The position numbers were made by a program, and so were the translations under genes. This document shows positions 2,727 to 35,447 of a DNA stretch of 35,678 nucleotides, in pieces. Each line of letters begins with the position of its first letter. Position 1 is the first letter of the stretch. The stretch lies in the NCBI GenBank assembly GCA_002269645.1, contig NIVC01004762.1, forward strand, positions 1 through 35,678. Reading direction: 5' to 3'. This DNA is from Macrostomum lignano (lineage: Eukaryota). Below the pieces are notes generated by a model, which worked only from the letters and a program-made list of their open reading frames with translations, was not told where the DNA came from and ran no database searches.

Positions 2727-4580
2727 CTGATTTCTTCTTTCATGTCTAGAGCCTCTTCTTGGCTAACCAGAATCCATAATTTGTCTGTTCCCGACTGCTT
2801 GGTAAGCAGTGCTTACCATAGATATTTTCTGGCATAGCATGTCACTTCCATTCCTGCCGGCTAGGCATACTGATCCAGCTTGGTTCAAACTGACGTGCTA
2901 GATGGGAAGGAAATGAACAGCACTACTGATTTAGCCAATAAAACAGTTTCACTTGCTGCCTGCTTGGTATGCGCTGCTTACCATAGAAATCTGTGCTCAG
3001 ACAGCAAGTCCCCTTTGTAGTAAAATAGCTTTCTTACAGTAACACTCTTACCATCTTGTTTGTTAGCCTTTTCTCGCTAAATTTGACACAGTATTTACTC
3101 ACTGATATCCTAAAGTACGTGGCTTCTGCCTCTGAGATCGACTACATGACCTCTGATAGTGAAGCAAGCCTCGACTCCTACTTAACAATAGACGAGGAGC
3201 CTGGCGAGGAGGTTGGCGAAGAAACACTGGATGGCAATCCTCCAACCATAGAAGGGCCTGACGGCGAGGAAGAACAGGAGTTTGCAGATGGCGATACTGC
3301 TGAAGTTGAGAATTTATGGCGACTTGTCGAGCCTGGGTCCGATGAAGGGACAGAATGTTTTGAATTTACCGGAACTGCTGGCCTCAATCCGAACTTTTTA
3401 ATTCCTGAGGATGTTGAGAAGGATAAGTCTTTATTTTTACATTTGTTTCTTTCTGAAGAGCTTTTCCAACGCCTCGCTGAATGGACAAACGCCAAGGTGG
3501 CCACCATGCTGATGGAACTGGATCCTGAGACGGATGTCCTTCCGTCCATTGTATCTAGCTGGCGGGACTGCACCGCAAGCGAGATGAAAAAGCTAGTCGG
3601 CATGCACCTGTACATGGGCCTGAACAAAAAGTCCGAGCTACATGACTACTGGAGCACAGACGATGCACAGCGGTGGAGTGGACACGCTGGACGGCACCCC
3701 TGCAGCCCTATGATGCCAGCAGAAAGACAACAAAATGGTTCCACAAGCTGGGTTTGCATATGTGCCTTTAAATGGTGCGCAACGCTTGGGTTCTGTACTG
3801 CAAGTGTGGTGGCCAGAATACTTTTATCAGATATCTCGAAGCCAGCATCCGTGATTTGGTAGAGCGAACTGGAAATGGCAGGAAGCGACCGGCTTCCATG
3901 CTGCAAACAGTTGCAGTCCCTGAGCAGCATTTTCCAGAGAAAATCCCAGGTCGTCCTACCCAGCCCAGACCTACGAAAAGGTGCAGAATGTGCTACAGTT
4001 CTGCCAGTTCCCGGCGCACAGTTTATTTCTGCAGCCGATGTCCAGGATGCCCGGGACTTTGTTTGTTAGATTGCTTTCAACGCTGGCATTCGCAGCGTTG
4101 AAGTACGAGCATCGGCAGAATGGACTCACTTTCCGCTAAAACTAAAGTTTTCATCCATTCTGTTTACTGTTTTTGCCTTTTGTCTTTAGCTCAAATTAGT
4201 TCACAACTCTTGATAATTTATATTAGTTTCACTAGTTATAGTTTCTGTAGTGCACGAGCCGTACGTTCTGTATGCGCAGTAAGTTTGATCAGCCAGAATA
4301 TTATCAGGTTTTTCATTCTCGTTTTTGTTGTTTAACTCTGTTATTAGTAAATTTGATTTCAAACTTTAATGAAGCCTCTTCGAACAAAAGTTGTGTTTTT
4401 GAACCAAAGCACTAAGGAACGTTACTGACGAAACAATTAAGAATGTAGAATGCAACGCCTATAATTGTCAGAAAACAAGAAAACCTAGAATACTCATGGT
4501 AAGCAGTGCTTACCTTATCCGGCAAGAACGGATACTACCAATTTAGCCATGGAATTTGATTTACTCTGGCCGGCAGAAAG
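2727..4580 (+). mobile_element. Internally deleted, non-autonomous piggyBac element (ends approximate)
   Basis: Contains piggyBac transposase fragments. A 17-bp palindrome GGTAAGCAGTGCTTACC occurs near both ends (2801-2817, 4498-4514) with inverted similarity in the flanks, and a variant copy at 2966-2982. TTAA at 2723-2726 and TTGA at 4581-4584 are candidate target sites. Confidence 0.7.
3146..4101 (+). pseudogene. piggyBac (PGBD-type) transposase pseudogene: acidic N-terminus, then C-terminal part and cysteine-rich domain; catalytic core deleted
   Basis: WRDCTASEMKKLVGMHLYMGL...LHDYWSTD is joined at ~3662 directly to GGVDTLD, then (+1 frameshift) YDASRKTTKWFHKLGLH, a stop at 3769-3771, and the C-terminal RCRMC...TVYFCSRC...LCLLDCFQRWH. 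Confidence 0.88.
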
Positions 4581-5997: not shown

Positions 5998-6557
5998 TTT
6001 AATGGTCGACAGGACGATTGACTATGTATTACTCAGAATTCCAATGAATTAGTAACGAATGTAGCGAGTGGGATGCGTAATTAAAGACCAGTTTGAGTAG
6101 TACATAAGCAATGGCTTGTTTAGATGCAAGAAAGCAATTCCCCGAGTTACATGAGAATGCATACCGGTATGACATGTGTAAAAAATGGGGTTTTCTGTAC
6201 AATACCAGCGTAACGGGCTAGTTTAGGTCAAATATTGAATACCGATTGGTACTTTGGTAAAAGTGACTGCAAAGTGCAAATAACAATCTTATTGTTGCAG
6301 AAAGAGTTTAGCTTTTGTTAGTTTTTCAACTAGCTAAAAAGGTGGTTCTTTCAAGACAAAGTTCAACAAGATCGATGTGTTCTTTTCATGCATTGTGATA
6401 TACAGTACACGTATAGTTATGGATATAGTTATTGGTATGACTAACCATTGAAATATTAGTAGCATTAAATAGAAAAGCTTCAAGCAGGAAAAAAATTCTG
6501 CTATTTCGAGTTCACTGTGTTATAATGCAAAGATTTACCTTCCAATCATTTGTTCAT

Positions 6558-7893
6558 TAGCTACATTATGAGTGTGCTTTTACGAGTGCATTCGCTACAT
6601 TATGAGTGTGCTTTTACGAGTGCATTAGCTACATTATGGGTGTGCTTTTACGAGTGCATTCGCTACAATTGGAGCGTGCTTTTACGAGTGCATTCGCTAC
6701 ATTATGAGTGTGCTTTTACGAGTGCATTCGCTACATTATGAGTGTGCTTTTACGAGTGCATTCGCTACAATTGGAGCGTGCTTTTACGAGTGCATTCGCT
6801 ACATTATGAGTGTGCTTTTACGAGTGCATTCGCTACATTATGAGTGTGCTTTTACGAGTGCATTCGCTACAATTGGAGCGTGCTTTTACGAGTGCATTCG
6901 CTACATATGAGTGTGCTTTTACGAGTGCATTAGCTACATTATGGGTGTGCTTTTACGAGTGCATTAGCTACATTATGAGTGTGCTTTTACGAGTGCATTC
7001 GCTACATTATGTGTGCTTTTACGAGTGCATTCGCTACATTATGAGTGTGCTTTTACGAGTGCATTCGCTACATTATGAGTGTGCTTTTACGAGTGCATTA
7101 GCTACATTATGAGTGTGCTTTTACGAGTGCATTCGCTACATTATGGGTGTGCTTTTACGAGTGCATTAGCTTCAATTATGGGTGTGCTTTTACGAGTGCA
7201 TTCGCTACATTATGGGTGTGCTTTTACGAGTGCATTCGCTACAATTGGAGCGTGCTTTTACGAGTGCATTCGCTACATTATGAGTGTGCTTTTACGAGTG
7301 CATTAGCTTCAATTATGGGTGTGCTTTTACGAGTGCATTCGCTACATTATGGGTGTGCTTTTACGAGTGCATTCGCTACAATTGGAGCGTGCTTTTACGA
7401 GTGCATTCGCTACATTATGAGTGTGCTTTTACGAGTGCATTCGCTACATTATGAGTGTGCTTTTACGAGTGCATTAGCTACATTATGAGTGTGCTTTTAC
7501 GAGTGCATTCGCTACATTATGAGTGTGCTTTTACGAGTGCATTCGCTACATTATGAGTGTGCTTTTACGAGTGCATTCGCTACATTATGAGTGTGCTTTT
7601 ACGAGTGCATTCGCTACAATTGGAGCGTGCTTTTACGAGTGCATTCGCTTCAATTATGGGTGTGCTTTTACGAGTGCATTCGCTACAATTGGAGCGTGCT
7701 TTTACGAGTGCATTCGCTACATTATGAGTGTGCTTTTACGAGTGCATTAGCTTCAATTATGGGTGTGCTTTTACGAGTGCATTCGCTACATTATGGGTGT
7801 GCTTTTACGAGTGCATTCGCTACATTATGAGTGTGCTTTTACGAGTGCATTCGCTACATTATGAGTGTGCTTTTACGAGTGCATTAGCTACAT
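6558..7893. repeat. 34-bp minisatellite, about 39 copies (TTATGAGTGTGCTTTTACGAGTGCATTCGCTACA)
   Basis: Period 34 (TTATG at 6600 and 6634). A few recurring variants (ATTGGAGCGTG, GGGTGTG, ATTAGCTTCA) are interspersed; there are no spacers. Confidence 0.97.
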
Positions 7894-8225
7894 TTAAATT
7901 GAAAATTTTGGCAAACTTACCGAGACTAGTGCGAGACTAGACTGATTTTGTACCGAGAAAAAATTATTATTTAAGTGCTTTCTGAGGAGAACAAAGACTA
8001 CGCTTTGACTTATTGAATGGGAAATATAGGATTATTAAAACACTGGAGATATTACACCAGCTTCACAAGTTTCTTTAGGAGTTTTTTGAGTCACATCGGT
8101 CCCAAATCCCAACGGGTCACGAACAAGAAATATCTCTCAGTCAAACAAGTCTGAAAGAGAATTGCAGCAAAACTCTCAAATAATCAATTTGACAGGAGAT
8201 CAGGACTCGCATGTATTCTCGGGTA

Positions 8226-9653
8226 TTAGCCACTTCCATCATCCTGCTCTGCTGGCAATTGGAGTGGCGCACGTTCAGCATTTGCTTCATCCTCAGCCTC
8301 TGGCTCCGGATACTGGTCCGTCTGGATGAGGGGAAAGGCCAACGGGAAAGCCACGCACCGGGTGTACGTGAGACAGATGACCAGCAGAATCAAATTAAGA
8401 GCATGGTTCACGCAGTAGAAATAGTTCATGTCGCTAGTCAGAAGAGGCATTACGACATGAAACGTGAAGTTTTGTATTAAATATCTGGCAAAGTAAGCCA
8501 GAGTCCAAACGCTGAAGGCGACGCCGAAAAGCACGAGCTTGTGGTCTCTCGTGCCAATCATATCGATGAACTCGTACACACCGACCATCACGACAATCTC
8601 CGACGCTCCATCCAGAAACGACGCTGTACAAAATAAGGCAGTGGTCAGAATGGGACTTGCTGGGCCCAGTTTTGCTAGAAGAAGATCTGCAGAACAACAA
8701 AATAGAGCAGCAGTTGCTGCAGTCAAGATTCCGACCTGAATTCTGATCTCGTGCGATATGAAAGACGTTTGCCTGCTGATTCCTAATAGAATCAGGAGCG
8801 CGGATGTGCCCAGCTTCGAGGCCATGTTCACGTACCGCGGCAAATCATTAGCTTGCATTTCTGCCAGAAGGTTGGACTCAAACAGCGAATTACTTGTCGA
8901 GTTTCTCGAGTAGAGAATGGCTTCCCTCTGGTACCCGTCAACGTGTTCGTCGTACAACTGGATAGAAAACATCGTGAAGGCACTGAGAATGCGAAAAAAC
9001 CGAACGAGACGTTTCATGGTTGGAACTTCCATAGAGCTTGGCTCCTCATCTTCTTTTAGTGTTGTTGAAAGCGACAGAAAAATCAGGCTCAAGCACACGC
9101 CGCCAACCATTATGCTGTAGTAGGTATTCCAGTATGATGTCACAATGGGAGCGACAAAAACTTCCAGCCACGTGGAGGCTTCAGCGCTGTAATAGTACAA
9201 GGCTACCAGCACCATGCGGCTCTTCCTCCCCCAGCTGAGGCGAACGAATCCGTAGAACAGGCAAGGTACAATTAAACCCATGTACAGAGGATGGAACATC
9301 CACACAAAAGCGTAGAACGCCGGGTGGCAGATCAGCCCGAGCGAGATGCTGATGGCCAGAAGAGCCGCAGCCACCGCAGTCACCGCTCCGCCGATAATCA
9401 GAACCGGCCGGAATCCGAGGTAGCTGTTCGCCATGAGACCACCGACCACGGACAGGGTGTATCCAAAGTGAAAGGTATACATCATTGGAGCATTTGTGTA
9501 ATTCACCAACCCTGACGGGTCTTTCAGCTGGCAGGTGCCGTTAACTTTGTGGTACAAATTACTGTTGTAGAGTAGGTACTCAAAGGTGACGTACTGGTTA
9601 ATTGCTTTCATGACGATCACCGCCACCAGACTTTTCCAACAGAACTGGGACAT
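8226..9653 (-). CDS. Intronless multi-pass MFS-type transporter, divergent POT/SLC15-like, 475 aa
   Basis: Uninterrupted ORF; the first ATG is at 9653 (the track starts at TTG 9662). About 12 hydrophobic segments. VGGLMANSYLGFR resembles POT TM2-3 (GGxLADxxLG), EIRIQVG resembles TM9, DGASEIVVMVGVYEF resembles TM10 (GISExFxxxxGLEF). N-glycosylation sequons follow TM1. Clear paralogy with 10974-12491. Confidence 0.8.
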   Translation of the reverse strand: MSQFCWKSLVAVIVMKAINQYVTFEYLLYNSNLYHKVNGTCQLKDPSGLVNYTNAPMMYTFHFGYTLSVVGGLMANSYLGFRPVLIIGGAVTAVAAALLAISISLGLICHPAFYAFVWMFHPLYMGLIVPCLFYGFVRLSWGRKSRMVLVALYYYSAEASTWLEVFVAPIVTSYWNTYYSIMVGGVCLSLIFLSLSTTLKEDEEPSSMEVPTMKRLVRFFRILSAFTMFSIQLYDEHVDGYQREAILYSRNSTSNSLFESNLLAEMQANDLPRYVNMASKLGTSALLILLGISRQTSFISHEIRIQVGILTAATAALFCCSADLLLAKLGPASPILTTALFCTASFLDGASEIVVMVGVYEFIDMIGTRDHKLVLFGVAFSVWTLAYFARYLIQNFTFHVVMPLLTSDMNYFYCVNHALNLILLVICLTYTRCVAFPLAFPLIQTDQYPEPEAEDEANAERAPLQLPAEQDDGSG

Positions 9654-10116
9654 ATTTGACAATGCAAGATTCGATATTTGTTCGCATTTCTATCTGAAAT
9701 TCCGTAATGTTTTATGTTACATTACCTGTGCCATGCAGCAGATTTCGGTTTTTGTACAGTTAGAACGCGCAACCCCAGAGGCTCTCAGCACGAAAGCAAG
9801 CCATCAAGCGTTCCATGTTTACCATGGACAGCTGCGAAAGATGGTAAGGTGTGCTTCTCAAAAAGGAAATGTTCAACTGCGAAAGACGCACGCGCTTGTC
9901 TTCACTGGCCACTGTACATTTGCTTAAAATACAGTTAATGTGCAAGAATCTCTGTGAATGCCTTCCTTAGCATAAATCTTTTCAAACATTTCAGGCATGC
10001 AGCGACAAACATCTGACTTGTGTCGCACAGTCTGAACACTTTCTTGGCCCTAGCCAAATAAACCTAAAATGACGATACTGGCTGGCCTTGCGTACATGCA
10101 CTGAAAAAGGACAACT

Positions 10117-10973: not shown

Positions 10974-12491
10974 TCAGCGGCTAGAGCGATGCAGATTGTC
11001 GCTGTCAATTGGTTCGTCACTGCTCGGCTCTTGGAACGAGCCAGGCGTTACTTCCTTTTGCTGAACGGAGCCCGACAGTTCACCCTGGCCCGATGGAATC
11101 AGCGGCTCCTGCTGGTCAGCGAGTCCCCACGGGTCCGGCTGCTCCAGGGTGGAAGCCAGCGGAAACGCCAGCCAGTGCGCGTAGGCCAGACAGGAGATCG
11201 ACAGGCCGAAGTCGATGACGTGATCGAGACGCGCGACCTGCAGCACGGTGCCTTCGCCAGTCGCGCCACCGCTAGCGATTCGATGGACGGCGAGGCCAAC
11301 ACAGTACCTGAATAAACCGGACAGAGCGCTGGCGGTGAAGCTGATGCCGAACAGCAGCAGCTTGTTCTGACTAAAGGAGATCGCGTCCGCCAGTTCGTAC
11401 AGGGCCACAATGCTGAGCATCTCAGAGACGCCATCGAAAAACGCGGCGTTACCAAAAACGCTGAATGCGGCTACCGGACCCCACGATCCGGCACTGCAGC
11501 CGAGTACCAGGTAGGCTGCAAGACAGCCTAATGAAGCTGCAGCCGCTAAGGCAACGCCCAACTTTAGTCTCATCTTGTGGGACATGAAGCGAATGTGGGG
11601 CGAGGCTGCCATGGCTACCAGAGCGCAAGCGGCGGCGAGAATTCCGGCAGTGTTGGCGTGCCGAGTGAAGTTGACATCCCACGCCCACTGCTCCCAGCTG
11701 GGCTTGGCTTCAGTGCGATTGAAAATAGGGGCCAAGTGCCGGATTTCTATGCGGTAATTCGATACGTGACCGTCGTTCATCTGGGCTACGAATACTATAA
11801 AAGCTGCGAAGATGCGCGCGTACCGCATCAGGCGCCTGACTGTCAGCTGTTCAAACTGGCGCCGGCTTGGCTCGGCTGCCAGCCCCAATGACAGAGCCAT
11901 GAACAGCAGGCACAGGGAAACCCCCGTTGCCGACACGACTGCACTATGCTGCCGGTAGGCGTAGAGCTGAATGCCTGACAAGGATGCTGAGCTGGATTCC
12001 AGAATGGGAGGAAGTTCAGTCACCAAGTAGTACAGCACCGCCAGCAGCATGCGGCTCTTAGGCCCGGAGCTCCAGCTAATCAGACTGTAGAACATGGTGG
12101 GAAGAAGCAGGCCATTGTACAGAGGATACGGGATCCAGGCCAGATAGTACAGCGCCGGCGTGCAAACCAGGCCGAACTGCGTGACAAGAGTAATCAGACA
12201 GACTCCAACGGACATTATCGCTCCCCCGAAGAACAGGATGCTGCGGTACTCCAGGGCACGGCCGAGCAGGCCGCCAACAATCGATAGGCTGCATCTCAAC
12301 ACGTGGCCTTTGGTTAGAAGGCCAATAAAACTACCTTTGTTTGGTTGCGTCGAGTTCAGCAATGTGCAAGTGTCATTGATCAAGGCAAATTCGTCTTTAT
12401 CGAAGCCCGAATACTCGATGTTGGCAAGCTGAACAATGAGCTTCATGCAGACAAGCAGCAGCAGGTTGACTGCCACCGTCTTGCAGGCCAT
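10974..12491 (-). CDS. Intronless multi-pass MFS-type transporter, divergent POT/SLC15-like, 505 aa; tandem paralog of 8226-9653
   Basis: Uninterrupted ORF with gccATGG start context. Blocks shared with the paralog: LSIVGGLL, GLVCTPALY, PLYNGL, KSRMLLAVLYY, TVRRLMRYARI, SHKMRLKLG, FFDGVSE, AFPLA. Confidence 0.82.
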   Translation of the reverse strand: MACKTVAVNLLLLVCMKLIVQLANIEYSGFDKDEFALINDTCTLLNSTQPNKGSFIGLLTKGHVLRCSLSIVGGLLGRALEYRSILFFGGAIMSVGVCLITLVTQFGLVCTPALYYLAWIPYPLYNGLLLPTMFYSLISWSSGPKSRMLLAVLYYLVTELPPILESSSASLSGIQLYAYRQHSAVVSATGVSLCLLFMALSLGLAAEPSRRQFEQLTVRRLMRYARIFAAFIVFVAQMNDGHVSNYRIEIRHLAPIFNRTEAKPSWEQWAWDVNFTRHANTAGILAAACALVAMAASPHIRFMSHKMRLKLGVALAAAASLGCLAAYLVLGCSAGSWGPVAAFSVFGNAAFFDGVSEMLSIVALYELADAISFSQNKLLLFGISFTASALSGLFRYCVGLAVHRIASGGATGEGTVLQVARLDHVIDFGLSISCLAYAHWLAFPLASTLEQPDPWGLADQQEPLIPSGQGELSGSVQQKEVTPGSFQEPSSDEPIDSDNLHRSSR

Positions 12492-13143: not shown

Positions 13144-13440
13144 TACTAGCTAGAAAAGGCCATGACTTCAAAAATGAACTGTGCAGTAGAATTTGTACCG
13201 ATGGATGAAGGAGCACATTGGGAGGGACCAAAAGCAGCCAAAGCATTGTGTACTCGACAGAGCTACGCATGCTTGCAAACCGATTCGCTGATGAAGGGTT
13301 GGGTTGCTTTGAGTACGCATGAGTCCGAATTATTAGGCGCAGTTGCGGGCATTCAGTTTCGTTAGCCGTTACTCAATGGTTCACAAAGTTTATCGAGCAG
13401 CGAGTTCCTGTATTGCTTAGGCAGTCCAAGAAACTCAACG

Positions 13441-16400
13441 TCAGAGATGCTGCGCCTCCTTCCTGTCAGGAGAATCATCCGCATCATTGCCGCCGCGCCT
13501 CTCCAGAGCAGCGGGCTGCTGCATCTCCAGGGTGCAGCGGCGCGAGCTGGACATGTCGGCGAACCTCGGATGGCGGACGGTGAAGTACCAGGCCAAGAAG
13601 AAGAAGGCGCACGCTGGCACCAGGGCGGCGGTGGTGAAGCCCACAAAGGAGTAGCGGAAGCGCTGGGTGTCGAAGAACAGGCAGGTCCGCTTGTAGCTCG
13701 GCCTCGGGTCGTAGAACAGGCAGGCTCGGTCGAAAAGGTGGCCCACAAATGGCGGCACCCAGATGCCTGTTGAGGGAGATTAAGTGCGAGTTTCGGCGAG
13801 ATACCCGCGATGACAGCTGCTTTCTGTAGAAGCAACACGATAGCTTCATTCATTAAGGGATTTTCTATAATATTTTCTGACCTCCAAGGCTGAACATGAA
13901 TGACGTCACACCAAGGCCCAGCGCCTTGTCTCGCGGCCGCACGCAGCGCAGCTGCAACACCGCCTCCTGGGAGCGGGCGCTGAGGCGCACCAGCTTGAGG
14001 AGGGTGAACAGCGCCACGAAAGTGTACACACTGGAGCTGCATTCGTCAGAGCAGAGCAGGTTGGTGCGCATTCGCAGCTGCGCCAGAGGGAAGCTGGCCA
14101 CCACGCCGGTGCTCAGGCCGGCGGTGCTGTTGTACATGCACTCACAGGACACGTTGCCGCCCCTCTGTGCGAGATGTATCGATATATTCAGCCAGATAGA
14201 AGGTGATTCATTTGACTGCAAAAAATTCACTCAGAACAGGCCGCTTACCGCGTGGCAGTTGGCGGCACACGGGCTGAAGAAGTTCCTCCCGTCGATGCAG
14301 ATCGGCTTGAAGGCGGCGGCGCTGCAGTTGCAGCCGGACGCGAAGGGCGACAGCTGAGGTGCCCCGGGGCCGCCGCTGGCCGAGCAGTCGGGGATGAAGC
14401 TGCCGCCGCTGATAAATTTGATAAAAAAGGATTGTTGGAGCCCTGCTGCACCCAAGTACAATTTGTCACTAGGCCGGCAGGCAAATAGGCTATCTGCGCA
14501 CACAAAGTCTGGCACTCACTGGCCACCAGCCGCAAATCCGCCCACCAGATCCACGCGCGGACAGACGAACAGGAACCCGGTCGCGGCCGCCAGCACTCCG
14601 AAGCAGTTGACGCAGGCGTGGAACTTGGCCAGCTGCGGCACCCGCCATTTGACGCAGGCGGCCACGCAGCTGCTGATGAGGATGCCGAGCACGTTGGCCC
14701 CCGGCCCGGCGATGCCGGCCAGGACTGCCGCCTTCCCGCTGCCGATGCGAAAGTGCAGGTTCAGGTACTTCACCATGTAGGCTATGATGCAGTTGATCTC
14801 CATGAACTCGAACATGTTGCCGCACAGCAGGCACACGTACACCGGGTTGCTTAGCAACCGTTTGAGCGAGCCGACAAAGCCGAGCAGGCTGTTGGGCTTT
14901 GCCTCTCCGGCGGCGGTTGCCTCCAATTGGCTTTTCCGACGCCTAGAGGAGCGCTTGCCGCCCAGGCGGAGGGCGACACGGCACAGGAGGCCGCCGCCCT
15001 CGCCCGCCGCCCGGCGCCGGTACTTCTCGGCATTGAAGCCGGGCCGGGAGGGGAACAGCAGCATCGGCAGGCCGAGCAGCAGCGACAGCAGGCCGACGAT
15101 GGCGAAGCCGAGCCACCAGGCAGGGATGTAGGTAGGGCTGGCGCGCTCGCGCGGTTCGGACGGAATCAGCTGGTCGCTGAGGCGGACAAAAACCTTGAAC
15201 GGTGAGAGGGGGGGTCAGAATTAGCTTCGCTTACTGGCATAACTAATTCAGCGAGGGGACGTGGATCGACTCAGAGCTCAGAACTACTAAGAGAGCCAAT
15301 TCCTGACACTGTGAAATTGACGCTCTGGCACCCTACCGGAGAGGAGAGGCACTCACTCGGCGTTTCGTCGAAGGCCTTCTGGCAGGCCTTGAGGAGCACT
15401 CTTGAGAAGCCCCCCAAATCCCTCAAACCCCCTTGATTTCCGAGCCTCTCCACTCGAACCTTTCCGTACAGCTGGTAGCCGAGAGTCGGCGACAAAATCT
15501 TCGCGGCGATGACGAGGCCGATGAAGACGCCAGAGAAGTCGCCCGTGATGTCGTCGATGAAAGCGACGCCCAGGTTGAAGTACGGCGCCACCGACAGGCC
15601 CTCGACGAAGCCGGAGATGAGGAACAGGCCCAGCGCCACGGACGATTCCAGTCCAGCGTCCTGGCCCTGCGGTATCGCGCCAGCGGGCGTGGAGTTGCGG
15701 AGCCCGGAGTCGGCCGGGCAGACGAACCCCAGCTGCTGGTTGGCCGAGGCGCCGTCTGCTGGCTGCGGCGCTGCGCCGAACAGAAAATGCGGCAGGGCGA
15801 ACAGAAGTCCGGACAGGCCGTAGCCGAAGCAGCTGAAAGCCAGCAGACGCGGCCGGTGACCTGCAGAATGGTTTGATGGCCAGCAGTGAAGCAGCTCGGT
15901 AATTCCACCCACTGCCTGGAGCCAAGGGCTGCAGGCCAAATTTGAGTGATCTCACAGCTTGAGTATCAGCTTGCCTCGCTTTGCACATCAGTTTTGTGGT
16001 TTGGTGCCTCCATTTTACACCAAAATTGTGAAATTTGTGTTCGAGCCTTTTGACTACTTAACTGCTCAGCTACTCAACTACTCAGCTACTACTCAGCTAC
16101 TCAGCTACTCAGCTACTACTCAACTACTCAGCTACTCAACTACTCAGCTACTACTCAGCTACTACTCAACTACTCAGCTACTCAACTACTCAGCTACTCA
16201 ACTACTCAGCTACTACTCAACTACTCAGCTACTACTCAACTACTCAGCTACTACTCAACTACTCAGCTACTACTCAACTATTCAGCTACTCAACTACTCA
16301 GCTACTCAACTACTCAGCTACTACTCAACTACTCAGCTACTACTCAACTACTCAGCTACTACTCAACTATTCAGCTACTACTCAACTACTCAGCTACTAC

Positions 16401-18941
16401 TCAACTACTCAGCTACTACTCAACTACTCAGCTACTACTCAACTACTCAGCTACTCAACTACTCAGCTACTACTCAACTACTCAGCTACTCAACTACTCA
16501 GCTACTACTCAACTACTCACCTACCCAGCTACTCCGCTACTTAACGACTCAGCTACTCAACTACTCCGATACTCAGCTACTCAGCTACTCAGCTACGGCC
16601 CCTTAAATCGCATTCACTCCTCTCATAAATGACTAAGTTGGATGCCAGGGTATTTAATCTTCACTGGCTTAGCAACTGTTAATAAAAAATCGCATTACAA
16701 GTTTTTGAGACTGAGTTGATCAAATCAGAATTGGATCATGCTGTCAATGAGGATGGTAGTTAAACAGTTGTTAAGTTGAACCAGCCGGTTAAGAAGAGTC
16801 ACTCAGCCATACCCAGCCGGTTGAGAAGAGTCACTCAGCCATACCCAGTCAGTTGGGAAGATTCACTCAGCCATACCCAGCCGGTTGAGAAGATTCACTC
16901 AGCCATACCCAGCCAGTTGGGAAGATTCACTCAGCCATACCCAGCTGGTTGAGAAAAGTCACTCAGCCATACCCAGCCGGTTGAGAAGAGTCACTCAGCC
17001 ATACCCAGCTGGTTGAGAAGAGTCACTCAGCCATACCCAGCGAGCCGAAGTAGGAGACGAGCAGCACGCTGGGCAGGTAGACCATATCGTTGGCCATGAG
17101 CACCAGGGCGGACGTGGCCGAGTTAAAGTTGAAGCGCTTCTCCAGCTTGGTGAGGCTGGCCGACTTCAGCGCGCTCTGCAGGCCGCCGCACAGGCCGAAC
17201 AGAGTCAGCAGCAGCAGGAACAGCTCGAACTGGTTCAACCGGCGCAGGCAGCGGCAGCGCAGGCCCCAGCAGCCGCATTCGTTCGACTCACCAGCCTCAT
17301 CGCTCGGCGAGTCATGCGAAATGTCTGGGGATGTTTTGGTCGACGGTTCGGTTCTGCTCAACTCTCAAATTTGTTGATTCCGTGTGAAAATCTGTGAAAG
17401 AGCTGGAAGGGGGCCACCGCTTTGGTGTGCAGGGAGGGGGTGCTGGAAGTCGCAAAGATCTTCAGGCTGGTGGTTGGTGTGCAGGGAGGGGGTGCTTGGA
17501 AGTCGCAAAGATCTTCAGGCTGGTGGTTGGTGTGCAGGGAGGGGGTGCTGGAAGTCATTTAATCATTGTTGTGAATCGCCATCTCCGCAAGCAGTTAAAC
17601 ATCCCGGATACAAAAGTCGAGTTCAAGGTGAAAAATTTTAAGTTAATTTGAATTTTTCAAAGCGGCGCACGGTTGCACCGAATCATTGCGGAATTATTGC
17701 TGTCGGAGTGCCTGATGCAGCGGCATTCAACATGCGGACAGAGGTGGGTTCGCGATTTGGACATGATGGAGCGGATCGAGAACAGCCGGTAGCGGCAGCC
17801 CACCTGGGATGCTGGGAATGATGAAGAGCCAGCGGGAAGAGGCGGCACAGAGGCCGACCGGGGCCCAGCAAAGAAAGTTCGCCCCGCACGGCCTCGACAG
17901 AAGTGCATTCGGGCCGGCACGATTATCCAGATGAAGAGTTTTCTCTGCCCCCCCCCAGGTAACCAGGTCACGCTAGTTGGGATCCCGCAGCTTCCCTGCC
18001 CCAGAATCTCCTTAGCAACAAATTGCGAAGTTGTAAAAAACCGAAGCTTCCCACTTCATTCCGACACCACATTGTGCCGGGGGGGAGGGGGGGCTGTTTG
18101 GAGCTTTGGAGTTTTTCAACTAAAAAGTGTGAATCCTCCAGGTAAGCAGGGTGTGGAAATTAGCGCAGATGCGCAGATGCGGCTCGGAACCCCTGCTGCC
18201 CGCTCCCTCGCTTTCAGTTTTGCAGAGCCTTGACCGAAAATGAGAATTAGGTGCATGATAGGCCGTTCCCTACTCATGTCTGCCTCAGCCATCAGAGAGC
18301 GGCTCACCCGTTCCCTACTCATGTCTGCCTCAGCCATTAGAGAGCGGCTCACCCGTTCCCTACTCATGTCTGCCTCAGCCATCAGAGAGCGGCTCACCTG
18401 CTCCCTACTCATGTCTGCCTCAGCCATCAGAGAGCGGCTCACCTGCTCCCTACTCATGTCTGCCTCAGCCATCAGAGAGCGGCTCACCTGCTCCCTACTC
18501 ATGTCTGCCTCAGCCATCAGAGAGCGGCTCACCCGTTCCCTACTCATGTCTGCCTCAGCCATCAGAGAGCGGCTCACCCGTTCCCTACTCATGTCTGCCT
18601 CAGCCATCAGAGAGCGGCTCACCCGTTCCCTACTCATGTCTGCCTCAGCCATCAGAGAGCGGCTCACCCGTTCCCTACTCATGTCTGCCTCAGCCATCAG
18701 AGAGCGGCTCACCTGCTCCCTACTCATGTCTGCCTCAGCCATCAGAGAGCGGCTCACCTGCTCCCTACTCATGTCTGCCTCAGTCAGCTGACTCACCAAC
18801 CAGCACCACCTCAGTGTTGACCTGGCCAGCTTCTTCTTCCGAGTCAGCGTCGATATCTTCGAATTTGTCAGCCGCATTCAGGAAGCTGACGAGCTCCTCG
18901 TCCTTCGCCTTCTCGGCCTTGGACTCGCGGCGGCTGCTCAT
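13441..18941 (-). CDS. SLCO: Organic anion transporting polypeptide (OATP/SLCO family), 7 coding exons, ~771 aa: 18941-18797, 17363-17037, 15860-15460, 15193-14520, 14408-14249, 14164-13882, 13766-13441
   Basis: The symbol is family-level only. Motifs: LTKLEKRF...VSYFG, HRPRLL, LPHFLFG, AWWLGF, Kazal-like GCNC...KPIC.DG.NFFSPCAANC, KALGLG, LFDRAC. All junctions are GT-AG and phase-compatible (2316 nt including stop). The first exon and the acceptor at 17364 (GAG) are the least certain. Confidence 0.9.
16061..16590. repeat. Low-complexity CTACT(CAG/CAA) 8-11-bp repeat in an SLCO intron
   Basis: Direct read; it produces the spurious ORF 15959-16606. Confidence 0.95.
16781..17040. repeat. 32-bp minisatellite x8 overlapping an SLCO splice donor
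   Basis: Unit ACTCAGCCATACCCAGCCGGTTGAGAAGAGTC (starts at 16801, 16833...). The last unit contains the real donor at 17036. Confidence 0.95.
17422..17557. repeat. 52-53-bp tandem repeat x2.5
   Basis: TTGGTGTGCAGGGAGGGGGTGCT at 17422, 17474 and 17527. Confidence 0.9.
18263..18784. repeat. 45-bp minisatellite, about 11.5 copies, at the 5' end of SLCO intron 1
   Basis: Unit CCCTACTCATGTCTGCCTCAGCCATCAGAGAGCGGCTCACCCGTT, with two variants (CCGTT and CTGCT). Confidence 0.97.
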
Positions 18942-21615: not shown

Positions 21616-24600
21616 TCACTTGCGCGCCTGCGACGGCATCAGCCGGTGCCACCGCGCCGAGGCCCCCTTGGACTTGAGCATGTTCCACCAGTGCCGGTAC
21701 TCCTGGCCGCCCGTGTCCGGGCCCAGGTACACCCGGCCGACCTCCGTGCTGCTGAGGACACCCTCGTGGCAGACGGAGATCTCCAGGCAGCCGGAGCGCA
21801 GGTCCTCCTCTGGCACGCCGTTGAAGATGAGGGCCTCCTCCCAGACCGGGTTGCCGGCCATCTTGCAGTTGGAGCTCTTCTTCCGCTTGATCTTCTTGCC
21901 GCCCTGCATCGACAGGGTCGCGCGGACGGTGGCGTCTGCGGAGTCGCGGATTCGGGGGACTCTCAAGGGTACCGTGAGCAGCACTCGCGGTTTCAGGGTG
22001 ACTGTCAGAGAGAAGCGCAACTGCCTACATTGCTGGCGTGAGCTATTGGTTCCCAGAACTCACCACTGAGCGGTCTGTCCTTGGCCGGGTCGCGCAGGTT
22101 ACGAGCCTTGATGACGGAGATGCTGAGCCGTTTGGCTGCTGGCAGGTAGGACAGGGAGAACATCAGGTCGCCGATCTTGTGCTCCTGGGAAGCGGAATAG
22201 GTTTTCTAGTTCTCACCGGAGCTCAGCAGCTACTCTCTAGAATTTCTGAGGCTTTAATCCCCACAAGCAATCGAACCTTGTTGAGCTTTACGTTTGTCAT
22301 CACGAAATCTCAAGCCCGCAATTTTTCAGGCTACGCGAAATGTGTCGAATGGCGATGTTTTATTCAGGATGGCTCGTCTCCCCAGAGCCCCCCAGCTGCA
22401 CGAAAGCCAGTTCAATTTGCCCATCCCGACTCGAAGTCATTCTTCAAATACGGCCTCGTGTTTGTATTGCCCCGGTCCCCGCACTTGGACCTGACGTCCC
22501 CGCTGTCTGAGTGATGGAGTCGGGCTCGCATGGACTGAATTTCAGCGCACTGGCTGCTCCGAATGCTTTTTGGTCGGGCATCAAAAAGAAACTGGGCAGT
22601 TTTTAGGGCTGCCTGCGGCCTGTTTATCTTAACCACTGAGAACCTCCTTCCCAGCTGCAGCTGAGCATTTGAGTTGTTTTGGTTCAAGCGAGTTCACTTT
22701 ACCGGGTCCGGGTCCTTCTCAGTTGCGGACAGGCCCTTCCACAGCAGTTGCCGCTCGCTGAACTCCGCCTCGGACAGCGGCAGTTTCACCTGGCCGAGGC
22801 AGTCATCGAGCGAGCAGGGGTCATAGTCGAACACGGTGATCTCGAGCACGCTCCAGTTCAGGTCCTGTGGCTTCACCTCGAAGATGAACTCTTCCTCGAT
22901 TTCGGGGTTGAGCGTCTTCTTCTTCTTCTTCAGTCCTTTTCTCGCCTCGCGGCGTGGACGCTCTGCCGCCGACTCACTGGCAGGGGTTGAGCGTCTTCTT
23001 GTGTATCTTGGTTGTCGTCTGCGTCTTGCGGTTGGGCAGCACGGCCACGCGGCAGTACGGGTTGGCGAGGCCGCAGGAGCTGTCCTTGGGCTGCAGCTCA
23101 ATGGCCTGGATGATGCGCACCGTCAGGATGCCAGTCTCCTCCTTGTAGGCGACGGAGAAGTTCAGCTGGCCGAGATTCTCCTCCTGGATGCTCTGGATGG
23201 TGGCGTTGGCCTGATTGTACTGCGGGTGACGGCGGTGGGTGGTTCGGGTGCGACACCTGCTTTCGGCTCAAGTGGAACTTCAACCCCACAGTCCAGCCCC
23301 AACCCCACAGTCCAGCCCCAACCCCACAGTGCAGCCCCAACCCCACAGTGCAGCCCCTACTCCAGAGTCCAGCCCCAACCCCACAGTCCAGCCCCTACTC
23401 CACAGTCCAGCCCCAACCCCACAGTGCAGCTCCAAGCCCACAGTGCAGCTCCAAGCCCACAGTCCAGCCCCAACCCCACAGTCCAGCCCCTACTCCACAG
23501 TCCAGCCCCAACCCCACAGTGCAGCCCCAACCCCACAGTGCAGCCCCAACCCCACAGTGCAGCCCCAACCCCACAGTGCAGCTCCAAGCCCACAGTGCAG
23601 CCCCTACTCCACAGTCCAGCCCCTACTCCACAGTCCAGCCCCAACCCCACAGTGCAGCCCCTACTCCACAGTCCAGCCCCAACCTCACAGTCCAGCCCCA
23701 ACCCCACAGTGCAGCCCCTACTCCACAGTCCAGCCCCAACCCCACAGTGCAGCTCCAAGCCCACAGTCCAGCCCCTACTCCACAGTCCAGCCCCAACCCC
23801 ACAGTCCAGCCCCTACTCCACAGTCCAGCCCCAACCCCACAGTCCAGCCCCAACCCCACAGTCCAGCCCCAACCCCACAGTGCAGCTCCAAGCCCCCACA
23901 GTCCAACACAAACCCCCACAGTCCAACACAAACCCCCACAGTCCAGCACAAAGCCCCACAGTCCAACACAAACCCCCACAGTCCAGCACAAACCCCCACA
24001 GTCCAACACAAACCCCCACAGTCCAACACAAACCCCCACAGTCCAACACAAACCCCCACAGTCCAACACAAACCCCCACAGTCCAACACAAACCCCCACA
24101 GTCCAACACAAACCCCCACAGTCCAACACAAACCCCCACAGTCCAACACAAACCCCCACAGTCCAACACAAACCCCCACAGTCCAACACAAACCCCCACA
24201 GTCCAACACAAACCCCCACAGTCCAACACAAACCCCCACAGTCCAACACAAACCCCCACAGTCCAACACAAACCCCCTCAGTCCAGCTCCAACCCCCACA
24301 GTCCAGCTCCAACCCCCACAGTCCAGCTCCAACCCCCACAGTCAAACTCCAACCCTTGCAGTCCAACTAAAATCCAACTCCAACTGCTCAGAGAGTTTGC
24401 TGGGATCAGCTGTCTACTAGGAGCAGAATTTTCCAGACTGCCGGAAGACGCTTCTGGAGGCTGAACCCAAATCCTGGAAGTCACTCTGCTAACTTTATGT
24501 CAACAATAAATTTGCTGTCTCGACGTGACGATGAGGCCGTGTCTCAGCTGCGGTCCAGCTGCCAGACCCACCTCCCGTCTCCTTCTCAGAGTCGTCGGTG

Positions 24601-25617
24601 AGCTACGCAAATGTTTGACCGCGGAGACTGAGCTGGCGGCGCCGAGTTTTCTGTGGCCGCCGCATCCGCTGTCAGCGCAGCCTCCTGATCTAATTATACT
24701 AATTGTGCCCGCCGCGCTCCCCTACGCCTTCGCAACCCTTCTTTTGCCTCACTTTCACCCTTCCTCTACTCACCTTTGACGCACCTAGCATCCCTTTCAG
24801 CGAGTAATCCCTCCCATCTCCCACTCGCTCCCTATGCTGCCCCTGTCTGCGCTTCTTCCGCCCTAATCCTAACCTTTTTTGCAGCTCTCCCCTCCCCGCC
24901 ATCTGTCTCCGGCTGCCTCTCGTTATTTAAGCTTTCCCAAGGCTTACTTTTCATTGGCTTTCATCGCAGCCCTAGCATATGAGGGACATCCTGTCTCCCA
25001 GCCAGCAGTTCCTGTCTCCCAGCTCAGCAGTTCCTGTCTCCCAGCCAGCAGTTCCTGTCTTCCAGCCAGCAGTTCCTGTCTCCCAGCCAGCAGTTCCTGT
25101 CTCCCAGCCAGCAGTTCCTGTCTCCCAGCCAGCAGTTCCTGTCTCCCAGCTCAGCAGTTCCTGTCTCCCAGCCAGCAGTTCCTGTCTTCCAGCCAGCAGT
25201 TCCTGTCTCCCAGCCAGCAGTTCCTGTCTCCCAGCTCAGCAGTTCCTGTCTGCTGGGGGTACCAGCTGGGGTACCAGATCAGCAGTTCCAGTTTGCTGGG
25301 GTACCAGCTGAGGTACCAGCTCAGCAGTTCCAGTCTGCTGGGGTACCAGCTGAGGTACCAGCTCAGCAGTTCCAGTCTGCTGGGGGTACCAGCTGAGTTA
25401 CCAGCTCAGCAACTCACCAGTTTGCTGTAAAGGTCGGCGTTGATCTTGGAAGCGTCGATGGCGTCCTGCATGCTGGCCCGCCGGCGCTCGCGTCGAAACT
25501 CGCCGCCGGGACTGGCGACCTTCGCCCGACCGCTGCCGCCGCCGCCGCCACCGCCGCCGCCGTCGGCCGCTGACATGCCGGTGGCCGGAGATTTCTCAGC
25601 TTCGTGCAGCGAGGACA
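21616..25617 (-). CDS. Synaptotagmin-like tandem C2A-C2B protein, core exons: 25617-25418, 23219-22978, 22940-22703, 22184-22064, 21935-21616
   Basis: C2A: NLGQLNFSVAY...LTVRIIQA...ANPYCRV...KKTLNP...FIF...TVFDYD...LGQV. C2B: GDLMFSLSYLPAAKRLSISVIKARNL...NPVWEEALIF...VGRVYLG...HWWNML...WHRL. Junctions are GT-AG and phase-compatible. The C2A exon is split by an insertion (see findings), so the 22941-22977 intron is hypothetical. Confidence 0.85.
22922..22982 (-). mobile_element. 61-bp insertion with 18-bp target-site duplication and (AAG)n tail; probable 5'-truncated non-LTR element
   Basis: GGGGTTGAGCGTCTTCTT is present exactly at 22904-22921 and 22983-23000, duplicating the KKTLNP codons. 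On the minus strand the insert ends ...GGACTG(AAG)3. Confidence 0.7.
23279..24365. repeat. Compound minisatellite: 19-bp unit (CCCCACAGTCCAGCCCCAA) changing to a 20-bp unit (CCCCACAGTCCAACACAAAC)
   Basis: Direct read; the unit switches near 23890. It is intronic and generates several spurious ORFs. Confidence 0.97.
24985..25410. repeat. 21-bp repeat (CCTGTCTCCCAGCCAGCAGTT) followed by a ~42-bp repeat next to a splice donor
   Basis: Direct read; the array ends next to the donor at 25417. Confidence 0.92.
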
Positions 25618-28449: not shown

Positions 28450-28748
<299 letters not shown>

Positions 28749-29440: not shown

Positions 29441-30285
29441 ATCAGCTGGGGTCACTTTAGGGTGTCAGCTGGGGTCACTTCAGGATGTCATCTGGGGTCA
29501 CTTCAGAGTGTCAGCTGGGGTCACTTCAGGGTGTCAGCTGAGGGCACTTCAGAGTGCCAGCTGGGGGGGCACTTCACGGTGTCATTGGGGTCACTTTGGG
29601 TGTCAGCTGGAGTCACTTTAGGGTGTCAGCTGGGGTCACTTCAGAGTATCAGATAGAGATGTCAGTAGAAATGTCAGTAGAAATATCAGTAGAAATGCCG
29701 GTAGAAATTTCAGTAGACATGTCAGAAGAAATGTCAGTAGAAGTGTCAGTAGACATGTCAGAAGAAATGTCAGTAGACATGTCAGTAGAAATGTCAGCAG
29801 AGATGCCGGAACTCGCCCCGCAGAGGCCGCTGTGCAGTCACTGCTGGTGTGCGAGAAGTCAGCGGCTGAGCTGAGCTGCCCGGCGGGCGCCATCCAGACG
29901 GAGTTCGCCATGTTCGGCAAGTCGGACGAGTTCAGCACGGCCTGCACCAGGACAACCAGCAGCCTGAACAACTGCTGGAGCCCGAACTCCCTGAGCTTCG
30001 TGCGGGCGCAGTGCGACGCTCGGCAGAGCTGCAGCTTCGTGGCCAGCAACGACAACTTCGGCGGCGACCCGTGCCCTGGCAACTACAAGTACCTGTTCGC
30101 CAACTACACCTGCCAAGGTGAGGCAGCAGCTTGATTGATTGACAGGAGGTGAATCACTCAGAGTGTCAGATAGGGTCACTTCAGGGTGTCAGCTGGGGGC
30201 ACTGCAGGGTGTCAGCTATGGGGCACTGCAGGATGTCAGCTGGGGTCACTTCAGGGTGTCAGCTGGGGGGGCACTGCAGGGTTGA
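29441..30285. repeat. ~23-bp minisatellite (GTCAGCTGGGGTCACTTCAGGGT), split in two by a 501-bp lectin-exon insertion
   Basis: The same unit occupies 29441-29656 and 30158-30285. Confidence 0.88.
29824..30134 (+). CDS. Intact copy of a SUEL-type (D-galactoside/L-rhamnose-binding) lectin exon; no matching signal-peptide exon found upstream (partial duplicate)
   Basis: VCEKSAAELSCPAGAIQTEFAMFGK...C...C...V...CDARQSCSFVASNDNFGGDPCPGNYKYLFANYTC matches the SUEL eight-Cys pattern with FGxDPCxGxxKYL. Acceptor CCCCGCAG at 29823. Confidence 0.75.
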
Positions 30286-33459: not shown

Positions 33460-33696
33460 ATGGAATGACAATTAGCGCTATGGCTTTCTCAAACACGCTC
33501 GTATTAAAAATGAGGTATTTAATATTCGAATGAGGAAATGAGGAATTCAAAGAGCATTCAGTTTCGAAGTAAAAGTTCCAACTAAATCTGCTCATGTATT
33601 TTCATTTCTGCTCAAAAGGCACCGGGCAGAAGCTGGCAGTGAAGCGGAACTTACCGGATGACAAACCTGTCGAGTGATTCACCTCCTGTCAATCAA

Positions 33697-35447
33697 TCAA
33701 GCTGCTGCCTCACCTTGGCAGGTGTAGTTGGCGAACAGGTACTTGTAGTTGCCAGGGCACGGGTCGCCGCCGAAGTTGTCGTTGCTGGCCACGAAGCTGC
33801 AGCTCTGCCGAGCGTCGCACTGCGCCCGCACGAAGCTCAGGGAGTTCGGGCTCCAGCAGTTGTTCAGGCTGCTGGTTGTCCTGGTGCAGGCCGTGCTGAA
33901 CTCGTCCGACTTGCCGAACATGGCGAACTCCGTCTGGATGGCGCCCGCAGGCAGCTCAGCTCAGCCGCTGACTTCTCGCACACCACCAGTGACTGCACAG
34001 CGGCCTCTGCGGGGCGAGTTCCGGCATCTCTGCTGACATTTGTACTGACATTTCTGCTAAAATGTCTACTGACACTTCTACTGACATTTTTACTCACACT
34101 TCTCCTGATATTTCTACTGACATGTCTACTGATATTTCTACTGACATGTCTACTGATATTTCTACTGACATGTCTACTGATATTTCTACTGACAAACTAG
34201 TAGTGCGGTAGGGATATGCGCGGACGCGGTTCTATGGCTGCATTTTGGCTCAGCTAATCCAAGGAGCCCTAGAAACAGAGCCTGGACAGAAACCTGAACG
34301 ATCTGCGGGATGCTGCCATCAAACACCTCTTGCGACAGATGAAGAGGCGAGTGTGTTTGGTTTAATTACAGAGGCTGAAATTCCTGCCTGCCCAGTGACA
34401 AGGACACAGTGAACTTGATGGCCACTCCAAAACTATTTGGCCCGAGACGAGGGTCGATCGCGAAATTTGCATGCCATCATTTCTGGACACGGCTCAGACC
34501 AAATAAATGCATTAAAACAGATGAAAGTTCAGTAATTAGAAAATTTTTCTGCTACAAGTTGAGGCAGCTTCTCGGTGCTGAAATTGCTTTCGGTTTTTCA
34601 TGCATGGCTGTTTCCATATGCTTTTTGCTGTTGCATCTGCTTTCCCGCTGTTCCCTCCCGCTGTTCCCTCCCGCTGTTCCCTCCACTGTTCCCTCCCACT
34701 GTTCCCTCCCGCTGTTCCCTCCCGCTGTTCCCTCCTGCTGTTCCCTCCCGCTGTTCCCTCCCGCTGTTCCCTCCGCTGTTCCCTCCCGCTGTTCCCTCCT
34801 GCTGTTCCCTCCGCTGTTCCCTCCCGCTGTTCCCTCCGGCTGTTCCCTCCCGCTGTTCCCTCCCGCTGTTCCCTCCCGCTGTTCCCTCCCGCTGTTCCCT
34901 CCGGCTGTTCCCTCCCGCTGTTCCCTCCCGCTGTTCCCTCCCGCTGTTCCCTCCCGCTGTTCCCTCCCACTGTTCCCTCCCACTGTTCCTCCGCTGTTCC
35001 CTCCCGCTGTTCCCTCCCGCTGTTCCCTCCCGCTGTTCCTCGCGCTGTTCCCTCGCGCTGTTCCCTCCGGCTGTTCCCTCCCGCTGTTCCCTCCCGCTGT
35101 TCCCTCCCGCTGTTCCCTCCCGCTGTTCCCTCCGCTGTTCCCTCCCGCTGTTCCCTCCGCTGTTTCCTCCCGCTGTTCCCTCCCGCTGTTCCCTCCCGCT
35201 GTTCCCTCCGCTGTTCCCTCCCGCTGTTCCCTCCCGCTGTTCCCTCCCGCTGTTCCCTCCCGCTGTTCCCACCCGCTGTTCCCTCCCGCTGTTCCCGCTG
35301 TTCTCCCCTTACCGCTGTTCCTCCCGCTGTTCCTACCGCTGCTCCAGCCCTTCGCATGAGCTCACCTTCAGTCTGTCCTCCGAAGAAACTGGCGAAGAAC
35401 AGTATGGCTGCTGCCACTTCAGTGCTCAGATGTTTCTTAGCTGGCAT
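33697..35447 (-). CDS. Secreted single-domain SUEL/rhamnose-binding-type lectin, 2 exons (35447-35366 signal peptide; 34006-33697 lectin domain); 1-bp deletion near 33950
   Basis: Exon 1 MPAKKHLSTEVAAAILFFASFFGGQTE ends at a phase-1 GTGAGC donor that fits the phase-1 acceptor at 34007. The domain is nearly identical to 29824-30134 but 1 nt shorter. Confidence 0.75.
34025..34195. repeat. 12-bp repeat (GTCAGTAGAAAT on the lectin sense strand) upstream of the lectin exon; homologous array at 29657-29800
   Basis: Direct read in both copies; the order of variants differs between them. Confidence 0.92.
34643..35340. repeat. 13-bp minisatellite (CTGTTCCCTCCCG) in lectin intron 1
   Basis: Direct read; it generates six spurious ORFs. 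Confidence 0.97.

Follow-up and report, generated by a model that had tools for sequence, protein, structure and literature searches.

Non-LTR retroelements that integrate by target-primed reverse transcription leave target-site duplications (TSDs) that vary in length and usually span some 7-20 nt or more. Their copies end in a poly(A) or short tandem-repeat 3' tail, which abuts the 3' TSD and often shares microhomology with the target. Introners are transposable elements whose insertion gives rise to introns. They insert into coding exons, are flanked by TSDs and carry a splice donor. Their families have many copies, from 5 to more than 2000, their TSDs measure 3-9 bp, and their splicing is documented by gene models (Gozashti et al. 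2022, PMC9860276). Some also add codons to the host gene, such as an Aureococcus Introner that contributes 12 nt (4 amino acids); no flatworm is mentioned in this work (PMC9860276). Flatworms have a class of microintrons, which are shorter than 75 nt; in Opisthorchis felineus, the most common length is about 37 nt (Ershov et al. 2019, PMC6530080).

The locus described here lies in the genome of the flatworm Macrostomum lignano. This hidden polyploid has undergone a whole-genome duplication in the recent past, and its duplicated blocks of at least 95% identity add up to 180 Mb (PMC5730564; PMC10468722). LINEs account for 1.66% and SINEs for 0.39% of this genome. In the stretch of 35,678 nt that was analysed as a whole (the window), a coding exon of a synaptotagmin-like gene is interrupted by an insertion that shares several properties with Introners, namely the location in a coding exon, the TSD and a splice donor of its own. 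The predicted spliced product would likewise retain extra codons. In contrast to the Introner families, the insert has one copy in 35.7 kb, an 18-bp TSD and a poor acceptor. On balance we consider it fairly probable that this is a young, copy-specific insertion (61 nt of foreign sequence and an 18-nt target duplication), probably target-primed, which inactivates or weakens one of several synaptotagmin-like copies in the polyploid M. lignano.

A 79-nt insertion in the C2A exon of a synaptotagmin-like gene

The host gene is encoded on the minus strand, and its product of about 345-359 amino acids is synaptotagmin-like, with tandem C2A and C2B domains. The Pfam C2 model matches two stretches of the protein (E 1e-37), and the nearest solved structure is the C2AB fragment of synaptotagmin-1 (E 2e-47 over residues 67-339). 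The relatives found in the protein database (5 of 5) are all from M. lignano. The definable introns of the gene measure 2198, 518 and 128 nt (5' to 3'), and the longest contains a minisatellite with 55 units of 19 nt. Splice donors are CTG/GTGAGT, CCG/GTAAAG and GTG/GTGAGT, and the three real acceptors, CACCCGCAG, CTTCCCAG and ACTCCGCAG, are all pyrimidine-rich and end in CAG. Outside the insertion site all exons are intact and error-free, and the exon halves that flank the insert translate into one continuous C2 domain. Elsewhere in the window, an open reading frame of 505 codons for amino acids (10974-12491) has no protein match at E <= 1e-20.

Within the C2A exon, the 18-nt segment AAGAAGACGCTCAACCCC (gene sense), which encodes KKTLNP (AAG AAG ACG CTC AAC CCC), is present twice. 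The two copies are identical in all 18 positions, their starts are 79 nt apart, and they are the only occurrences in the window. No third site is found there even when up to two mismatches are allowed, with a chance expectation of 0.01 matches. When tandem arrays are left out, only three direct repeats in the entire 35.7-kb window are exact over 13 nt or more at a spacing of at most 400 nt. The duplication can be extended to 27 nt at 85% identity, but this merely reflects the AAG-richness of the region.

On the minus strand, the order of elements is ACC AAG ATA CAC, AAGAAGACGCTCAACCCC, the filler TGCCAGTGAGTCGGCGGCAGAGCGTCCACGCCGCGAGGCGAGAAAAGGACTGAAGAAGAAG, AAGAAGACGCTCAACCCC and GAA ATC GAG (Table 1). 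The filler of 61 nt begins with TGCCA-GTGAGT and ends with (AAG)3, and neither a second copy nor a local template for it is present on either strand of the 35.7-kb window. The 79-nt structure of 18-nt duplication and unique filler is real. An earlier reading of the same DNA, made from the sequence only, had described the KKTLNP codons as doubled around a 61-bp insert (79 bp net), with GTGAGT five bases into the insert, and the repeat, the hexamer and the coordinates were all found as described. The insertion point lies directly after KTLNP and aligns with KTLNP/VFNE in synaptotagmin-1, in the loop that connects strands 4 and 5. In the C2 fold, this loop after beta4 of C2A lies on the calcium- and membrane-binding side of the domain.

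Table 1. Features of the synaptotagmin-like gene and of the insertion in its C2A exon (positions in the window).
Feature	Position	Strand	Remarks
Upstream coding exon (MSAADG9SGRAKV...RRERRRASMQDAIDASKINADLYSKL)	25418..25576	-	Donor CTG/GTGAGT; true start maybe further upstream
C2A exon with insertion	22703..23219	-	Without one 79-nt unit, 146 aa identical to A0A1I8HQQ0
Upstream TSD copy AAGAAGACGCTCAACCCC (KKTLNP)	22983..23000	-	Repeat search
Inserted filler TGCCAGTGAGTCGGCGGCAGAGCGTCCACGCCGCGAGGCGAGAAAAGGACTGAAGAAGAAG, 61 nt	22922..22982	-	Unique in the window; no Rfam or adapter match
GTGAGT donor-like hexamer within the insert	22972..22977	-	TGA at 22976-22974 is an in-frame premature stop
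Candidate 37-nt GT-AG microintron	22941..22977	-	Acceptor gcgAG followed by AAAAGG, without pyrimidine tract
(AAG)5 run across the insert/TSD junction	22916..22930	-	Direct reading; (AAG)3 insert tail and AAGAAG start of the TSD
Downstream TSD copy, 18 nt	22904..22921	-	Repeat search
Exon with linker and start of C2B (EHKIGDLMFSLSYLPAAKRLSISVIKARNLRDPAKDRPLS)	22064..22184	-	
Last coding exon, remainder of C2B, end ...MPSQARK*	21616..21935	-	Intact

Insert-free copies and the origin of the insert

Two annotated M. lignano proteins, A0A1I8HQQ0 (P0001) and A0A1I8ID16 (P0006), have a single KKTLNP and read KIHKKTLNPEIEEEF. For the comparison with these proteins, one 79-nt unit was deleted from the C2A exon, and the exons were joined and translated. 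The product is identical to A0A1I8HQQ0 in 231 of 231 residues, and agrees with A0A1I8ID16 in 291 of 292 residues, with one T/I difference. Both gene models start with 12 residues that derive from the intron just 5' of the C2A exon and are identical to the window. It therefore appears that the models represent this locus or copies of it that arose very recently by duplication. In all 19 registers of a 79-nt excision, the ends are neither GT/GC-AG nor AT-AC, which agrees with the previous observation that no sliding GT/GC-AG pair removes the full 79 bp. A gene model based on splice sites could thus not skip the insert, and the two models imply that insert-free DNA exists. The sequence-only reading had proposed a true insertion with an 18-bp TSD inside the C2A exon, and had pointed to a copy with a single KKTLNP as a check. 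The proposal is borne out by the exact duplication and by the empty site in the two proteins, which match the window exactly or in all but one residue.

A more diverged paralogue is also annotated, which is 84% identical in the portion of C2A that could be aligned. A cluster look-up for the insert-free copies and the paralogues gave no more than two UniRef members. The paralogue model P0003 lacks 19 residues that end at the insertion site, and its other anomalies suggest assembly indels that were bridged by spurious introns, so that this model was left aside. Since insert-free copies exist, the insertion should be copy- or allele-specific. The identity of the two TSD copies, the intactness of every other exon and the existence of insert-free copies all indicate that it is young. 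Judging from these comparisons, the insertion is recent and specific to one copy or allele.

The insertion probably arose by target-primed reverse transcription. The TSD is exact over 18 nt, a length that exceeds the TSDs of known DNA transposons and LTR elements and is characteristic of target-primed reverse transcription. The filler ends in a repeat tail next to the 3' TSD, with a microhomology between tail and target of 6 nt, although a tail of three repeat units would be a weak indication by itself. The source may have been a severely 5'-truncated retroelement or another RNA. A nick in the bottom strand would have generated a ...CTTCTT-3' end that could pair with the (AAG)n tail of the RNA, and the duplication of the target would have followed from another nick at a distance of 18 nt. 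The likeness to 5'-truncated LINE or SINE insertions extends from the TSD, the adjoining tail and the microhomology to the very short insert body, as expected for severe 5' truncation, and to the sense orientation. Differences are the single copy in the window, the absence of a reverse-transcriptase open reading frame nearby, and the failure to find a parent element. The sequence-only reading had described long TSDs with short tandem tails such as (GAA)n as typical of RTE-type LINEs, and we treat the assignment of the insert to the RTE clade as an assumption.

Frame 3 of the filler encodes PVSRRQSVHAARREKD and then a stop that closely precedes the (AAG) tail, an arrangement expected of an element whose 3' UTR is very short. 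A protein search with a 46-aa read-through query that included PVSRRQSVHAARREKD gave no candidate, and exact-match scans for the insert in metagenome and prokaryotic contigs gave 0 matches. Rfam identified nothing in the insertion region or in the whole window, and the predicted RNA structure around the insert is not notable (z = -1.5). The filler has no similarity to the sequencing adapters that were compared or to the M. lignano spliced leader.

The insert could also have been acquired in the repair of a double-strand break with captured filler, and not by retrotransposition. The 61-mer would then be an isolated fragment of another genomic region, with the same consequence for the reading frame. 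Such an origin would account for the lack of a parent element in the window and in the protein search, and for the GC-rich filler, which resembles ordinary M. lignano genic sequence. It would also have a parallel in Daphnia, where Li et al., in 2009, reportedly attributed new introns flanked by short direct repeats to break repair. However, an exact duplication of 18 nt requires strand cuts with a long stagger. Such cuts are characteristic of the endonucleases of mobile elements, not of end joining, and the repeat tail, with its microhomology to the target, is a signature of target-primed reverse transcription. Templated insertions made by polymerase theta usually copy nearby sequence, whereas the window holds no template for the filler on either strand. 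Filler capture thus appears rather unlikely.

An assembly artefact, with the 79 nt absent from every real chromosome copy, is a good deal less credible still. The two annotated gene models without the insert would be consistent with it, and the genome is repeat-rich and redundant, with indel errors in an earlier assembly and garbled paralogue models (P0003-P0005). Yet errors do not make 61 nt of novel, non-repetitive sequence between perfect 18-nt duplicates, the filler does not resemble the adapters compared, and the surrounding exons are free of errors. The 79 nt might, finally, be an old tandem duplication of which the first 61 nt have diverged. Aligned in register with the 61 nt that precede the first copy, the filler agrees in 25 of 61 positions, which is in the top 1% of 61-mers from the same gene (p about 0.01). 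With gaps allowed, however, the score is not unusual and is reached by 5.6% of same-gene controls. Moreover, 18 perfect bases beside 59% divergence are incompatible with neutral decay, and near-identical insert-free copies exist. Old tandem duplication is therefore extremely improbable and was rejected; in view of the gapped score and the perfect 18-mer, the likeness in 25 of 61 positions is taken as chance.

Reading frame and candidate splicing of the insert

When the insert is translated unspliced, the frame reads KKTLNPCQ*, with the stop two codons into the insert, at the TGA inside GTGAGT. The protein would be truncated in mid-C2A, and since the stop is upstream of two exon junctions, nonsense-mediated decay would be expected. 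The insertion is thus predicted most likely to knock out the host copy and to create a null or strongly hypomorphic allele.

In the search for a possible rescue, every GT/GC-AG pair in the C2A exon that leaves an open frame was enumerated. Only two of these pairs keep all original residues, a 37-nt GT-AG pair and a 52-nt GC-AG pair. Excision of the 37-nt segment leaves 42 nt of the insertion, restores the frame and adds 14 residues, so that the product would read KKTLNP-CQKGLKKKKKTLNP-EIEEEF. Translation confirmed this product, which had been anticipated from the sequence. The 52-nt segment (22992-22941), which would add nine residues, was discarded for its poor donor, GAC/GCTCAA, and the remaining in-frame pairs were discarded because they delete or rewrite C2A residues. 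Joining of the GTGAGT donor to the acceptor of the next exon was likewise dismissed, as it shifts the frame according to the intron phases. By hand count, the AG dinucleotides in the insert and the adjoining (AAG) run end at intron lengths of 15, 17, 32, 37, 42, 50, 53, 56, 59 and 62 nt from the GTGAGT donor, and 37 nt alone is in frame.

It is conceivable that splicing between the GTGAGT of the insert and the GAG at 22941 makes the segment a nascent 37-nt microintron, and that the copy is functional with a polybasic CQKGLKKKKKTLNP of 14 residues. The segment is the sole GT-AG pair that both restores the frame and keeps all residues, and it has a candidate branch A (TCCAC) at intron position 23, 14 nt from the acceptor. 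A (GAA)n run just 3' of the acceptor could serve as a splicing enhancer. In vertebrates and Drosophila, purine-rich (GAA)n runs that directly follow a weak acceptor are well established as splicing enhancers. The alignment with the loop after KTLNP of synaptotagmin-1 places the added residues where an insertion may be tolerated, and added codons have a precedent in some Introners (PMC9860276). The donor, CCA/GTGAGT, agrees with the M. lignano motif GT[G/A]AG (PMC8629364). The length of 37 nt equals the mode in O. felineus, and M. lignano also has microintrons; like many flatworm microintrons, the candidate has no pyrimidine tract (PMC6530080).

The acceptor is the main difficulty. With gcgAG, it has a G at -3 and a purine-rich upstream region, in contrast to the three pyrimidine-rich CAG acceptors of the gene, and CAG is also the acceptor motif that is enriched in M. 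lignano (PMC8629364). Microintrons reportedly need splice sites nearer to the consensus (PMC6530080), and in the candidate the donor fits but the acceptor, GAG instead of CAG, does not. Out-of-frame AGs compete at intron lengths of 32, 42 and 50-62 nt (hand count), and the predicted junction is absent from the proteins among the five database matches. Conservation offers no support, as the event is too young. The sequence-only reading had raised both the length and the acceptor as caveats. The first has lost weight, since flatworm microintrons peak at about 37 nt (PMC6530080), and the accompanying statement that other introns measure 84 nt and up was not borne out in the synaptotagmin-like gene, where no 84-nt intron was found and the shortest defined one has 128 nt. 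The second stands and is even stronger than stated, because the acceptors of the gene are all CAG.

A functional copy with a nascent intron is therefore unlikely, and so is appreciable in-frame splicing of the 37-nt segment, as far as this can be predicted from the sequence. In-frame rescue via the GT-AG segment might concern a minority of transcripts at best. We are equally doubtful that a retroelement tail is becoming a spliceosomal microintron in an animal, with a weak GAG acceptor boosted by (GAA)n and a 14-residue polylysine loop insertion in C2A.

A probably disrupted gene copy in a duplicated genome

A young insertion that inactivates or weakens one gene copy is thus the reading that we prefer. 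The persistence of the disrupted allele could be explained by the near-identical and the more diverged copies, which would supply the function; a null or weak allele may be tolerated because these other copies exist. The locus resembles a young pseudogene, or a loss-of-function indel after whole-genome duplication, in that the copy is intact apart from one disabling lesion, and in that near-identical intact copies are present. It differs in that the lesion brings along a donor and a single GT-AG pair that restores the frame, and full loss of function is therefore not certain.

If the preferred reading is correct, the locus would be an ordinary case of redundant copies gaining disabling insertions in a recently duplicated genome. 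The insertion would then serve chiefly to mark one specific copy, and would warn annotators of the M. lignano genome and designers of knockouts that near-identical copies differ in integrity. Should the 37-nt segment be spliced, the locus would instead represent a rare and datable animal intron created by an insertion, within a lineage where microintrons are already in use, and a natural experiment in which a polybasic loop has been added to a synaptotagmin C2A domain.

Paralogue models and the intron upstream of the C2A exon

The annotated M. lignano paralogue models of the synaptotagmin-like gene that lie outside the window (P0003, P0004 and P0005) are garbled. P0003 is without 19 residues, VLPNRKTQTTTKIHKRTLS, and the end of this gap coincides with the exact site at which the C2A exon in the window carries its insertion. 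The likeliest explanation is that assembly indels have been bridged by spurious introns. Alternatively, the paralogue itself, which is known here from its protein model, may carry a lesion at the same site as the insertion in the window.

Half of the 2.2-kb intron immediately upstream of the C2A exon is occupied by a minisatellite (unit CAACCCCACAGTCCAGCCC). Both insert-free gene models, P0001 and P0006, begin shortly downstream of this array, a position that would suit a break in an earlier assembly or in the gene modelling.

Repeats in the window

Tandem repeats account for 44 TRF rows in the entire window, some of which are listed among the features in the table. With 29.5% GC, the first 2000 nt are far richer in AT than the remainder of the window, where GC is 40-62%. 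This AT-rich region contains two exact direct copies of TTGCAATGTATTTAATAATCAGTC at a spacing of 52 nt. Besides the 18-nt duplication in the C2A exon, this is the sole long direct repeat with closely spaced copies outside tandem arrays. The arms of a perfect inverted repeat (100% complementary) are 3.5 kb apart, and their flanks match at 89%. A SUEL-type galactose/rhamnose-binding lectin domain is encoded in an arm, and the lectin exon is therefore duplicated in inverted orientation.

Further features of the window
Feature	Position	Strand	Detail
24-nt direct repeat	1297-1372
piggyBac-type transposase ORF, N-terminal part	3056-3862	(+)	DDE_Tnp_1_7, E 2e-11
Tandem repeat	6555-7894		34 nt x 39
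Intronless ORF	8226-9662	(-)	478 aa
Intronless ORF	10974-12491	(-)	505 aa
OATP/SLCO exons	about 13360-17360	(-)	PF03137
Minisatellite	23281-24355		19 nt x 55
Tandem repeat	28450-28748		(GGCA)75
Inverted repeat	29880-30159 / 33672-33951		280 nt
Its flanks	29654-29880 / 33950-34176
SUEL-type lectin domain	29832-30134	(+)	Pfam, E 4.6e-19
Tandem repeat	34643-35345		13 nt x 55

Other genes

Two exon ORFs of the organic anion transporter family gene match PF03137 (E 2e-22 and 2e-18). The transposase ORF aligns to profile positions 5-69 of 349; because only this N-terminal part of the domain is matched, it represents a transposase fragment or a domesticated piece. The two long intronless ORFs are mutual paralogues (31% identity, E 3e-65), and their products are hydrophobic and probably multi-pass membrane proteins. 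Pfam gives no match for either of them, and at E <= 1e-20 the 505-aa ORF has no database relative. The two ORFs may constitute a lineage-specific tandem gene pair.
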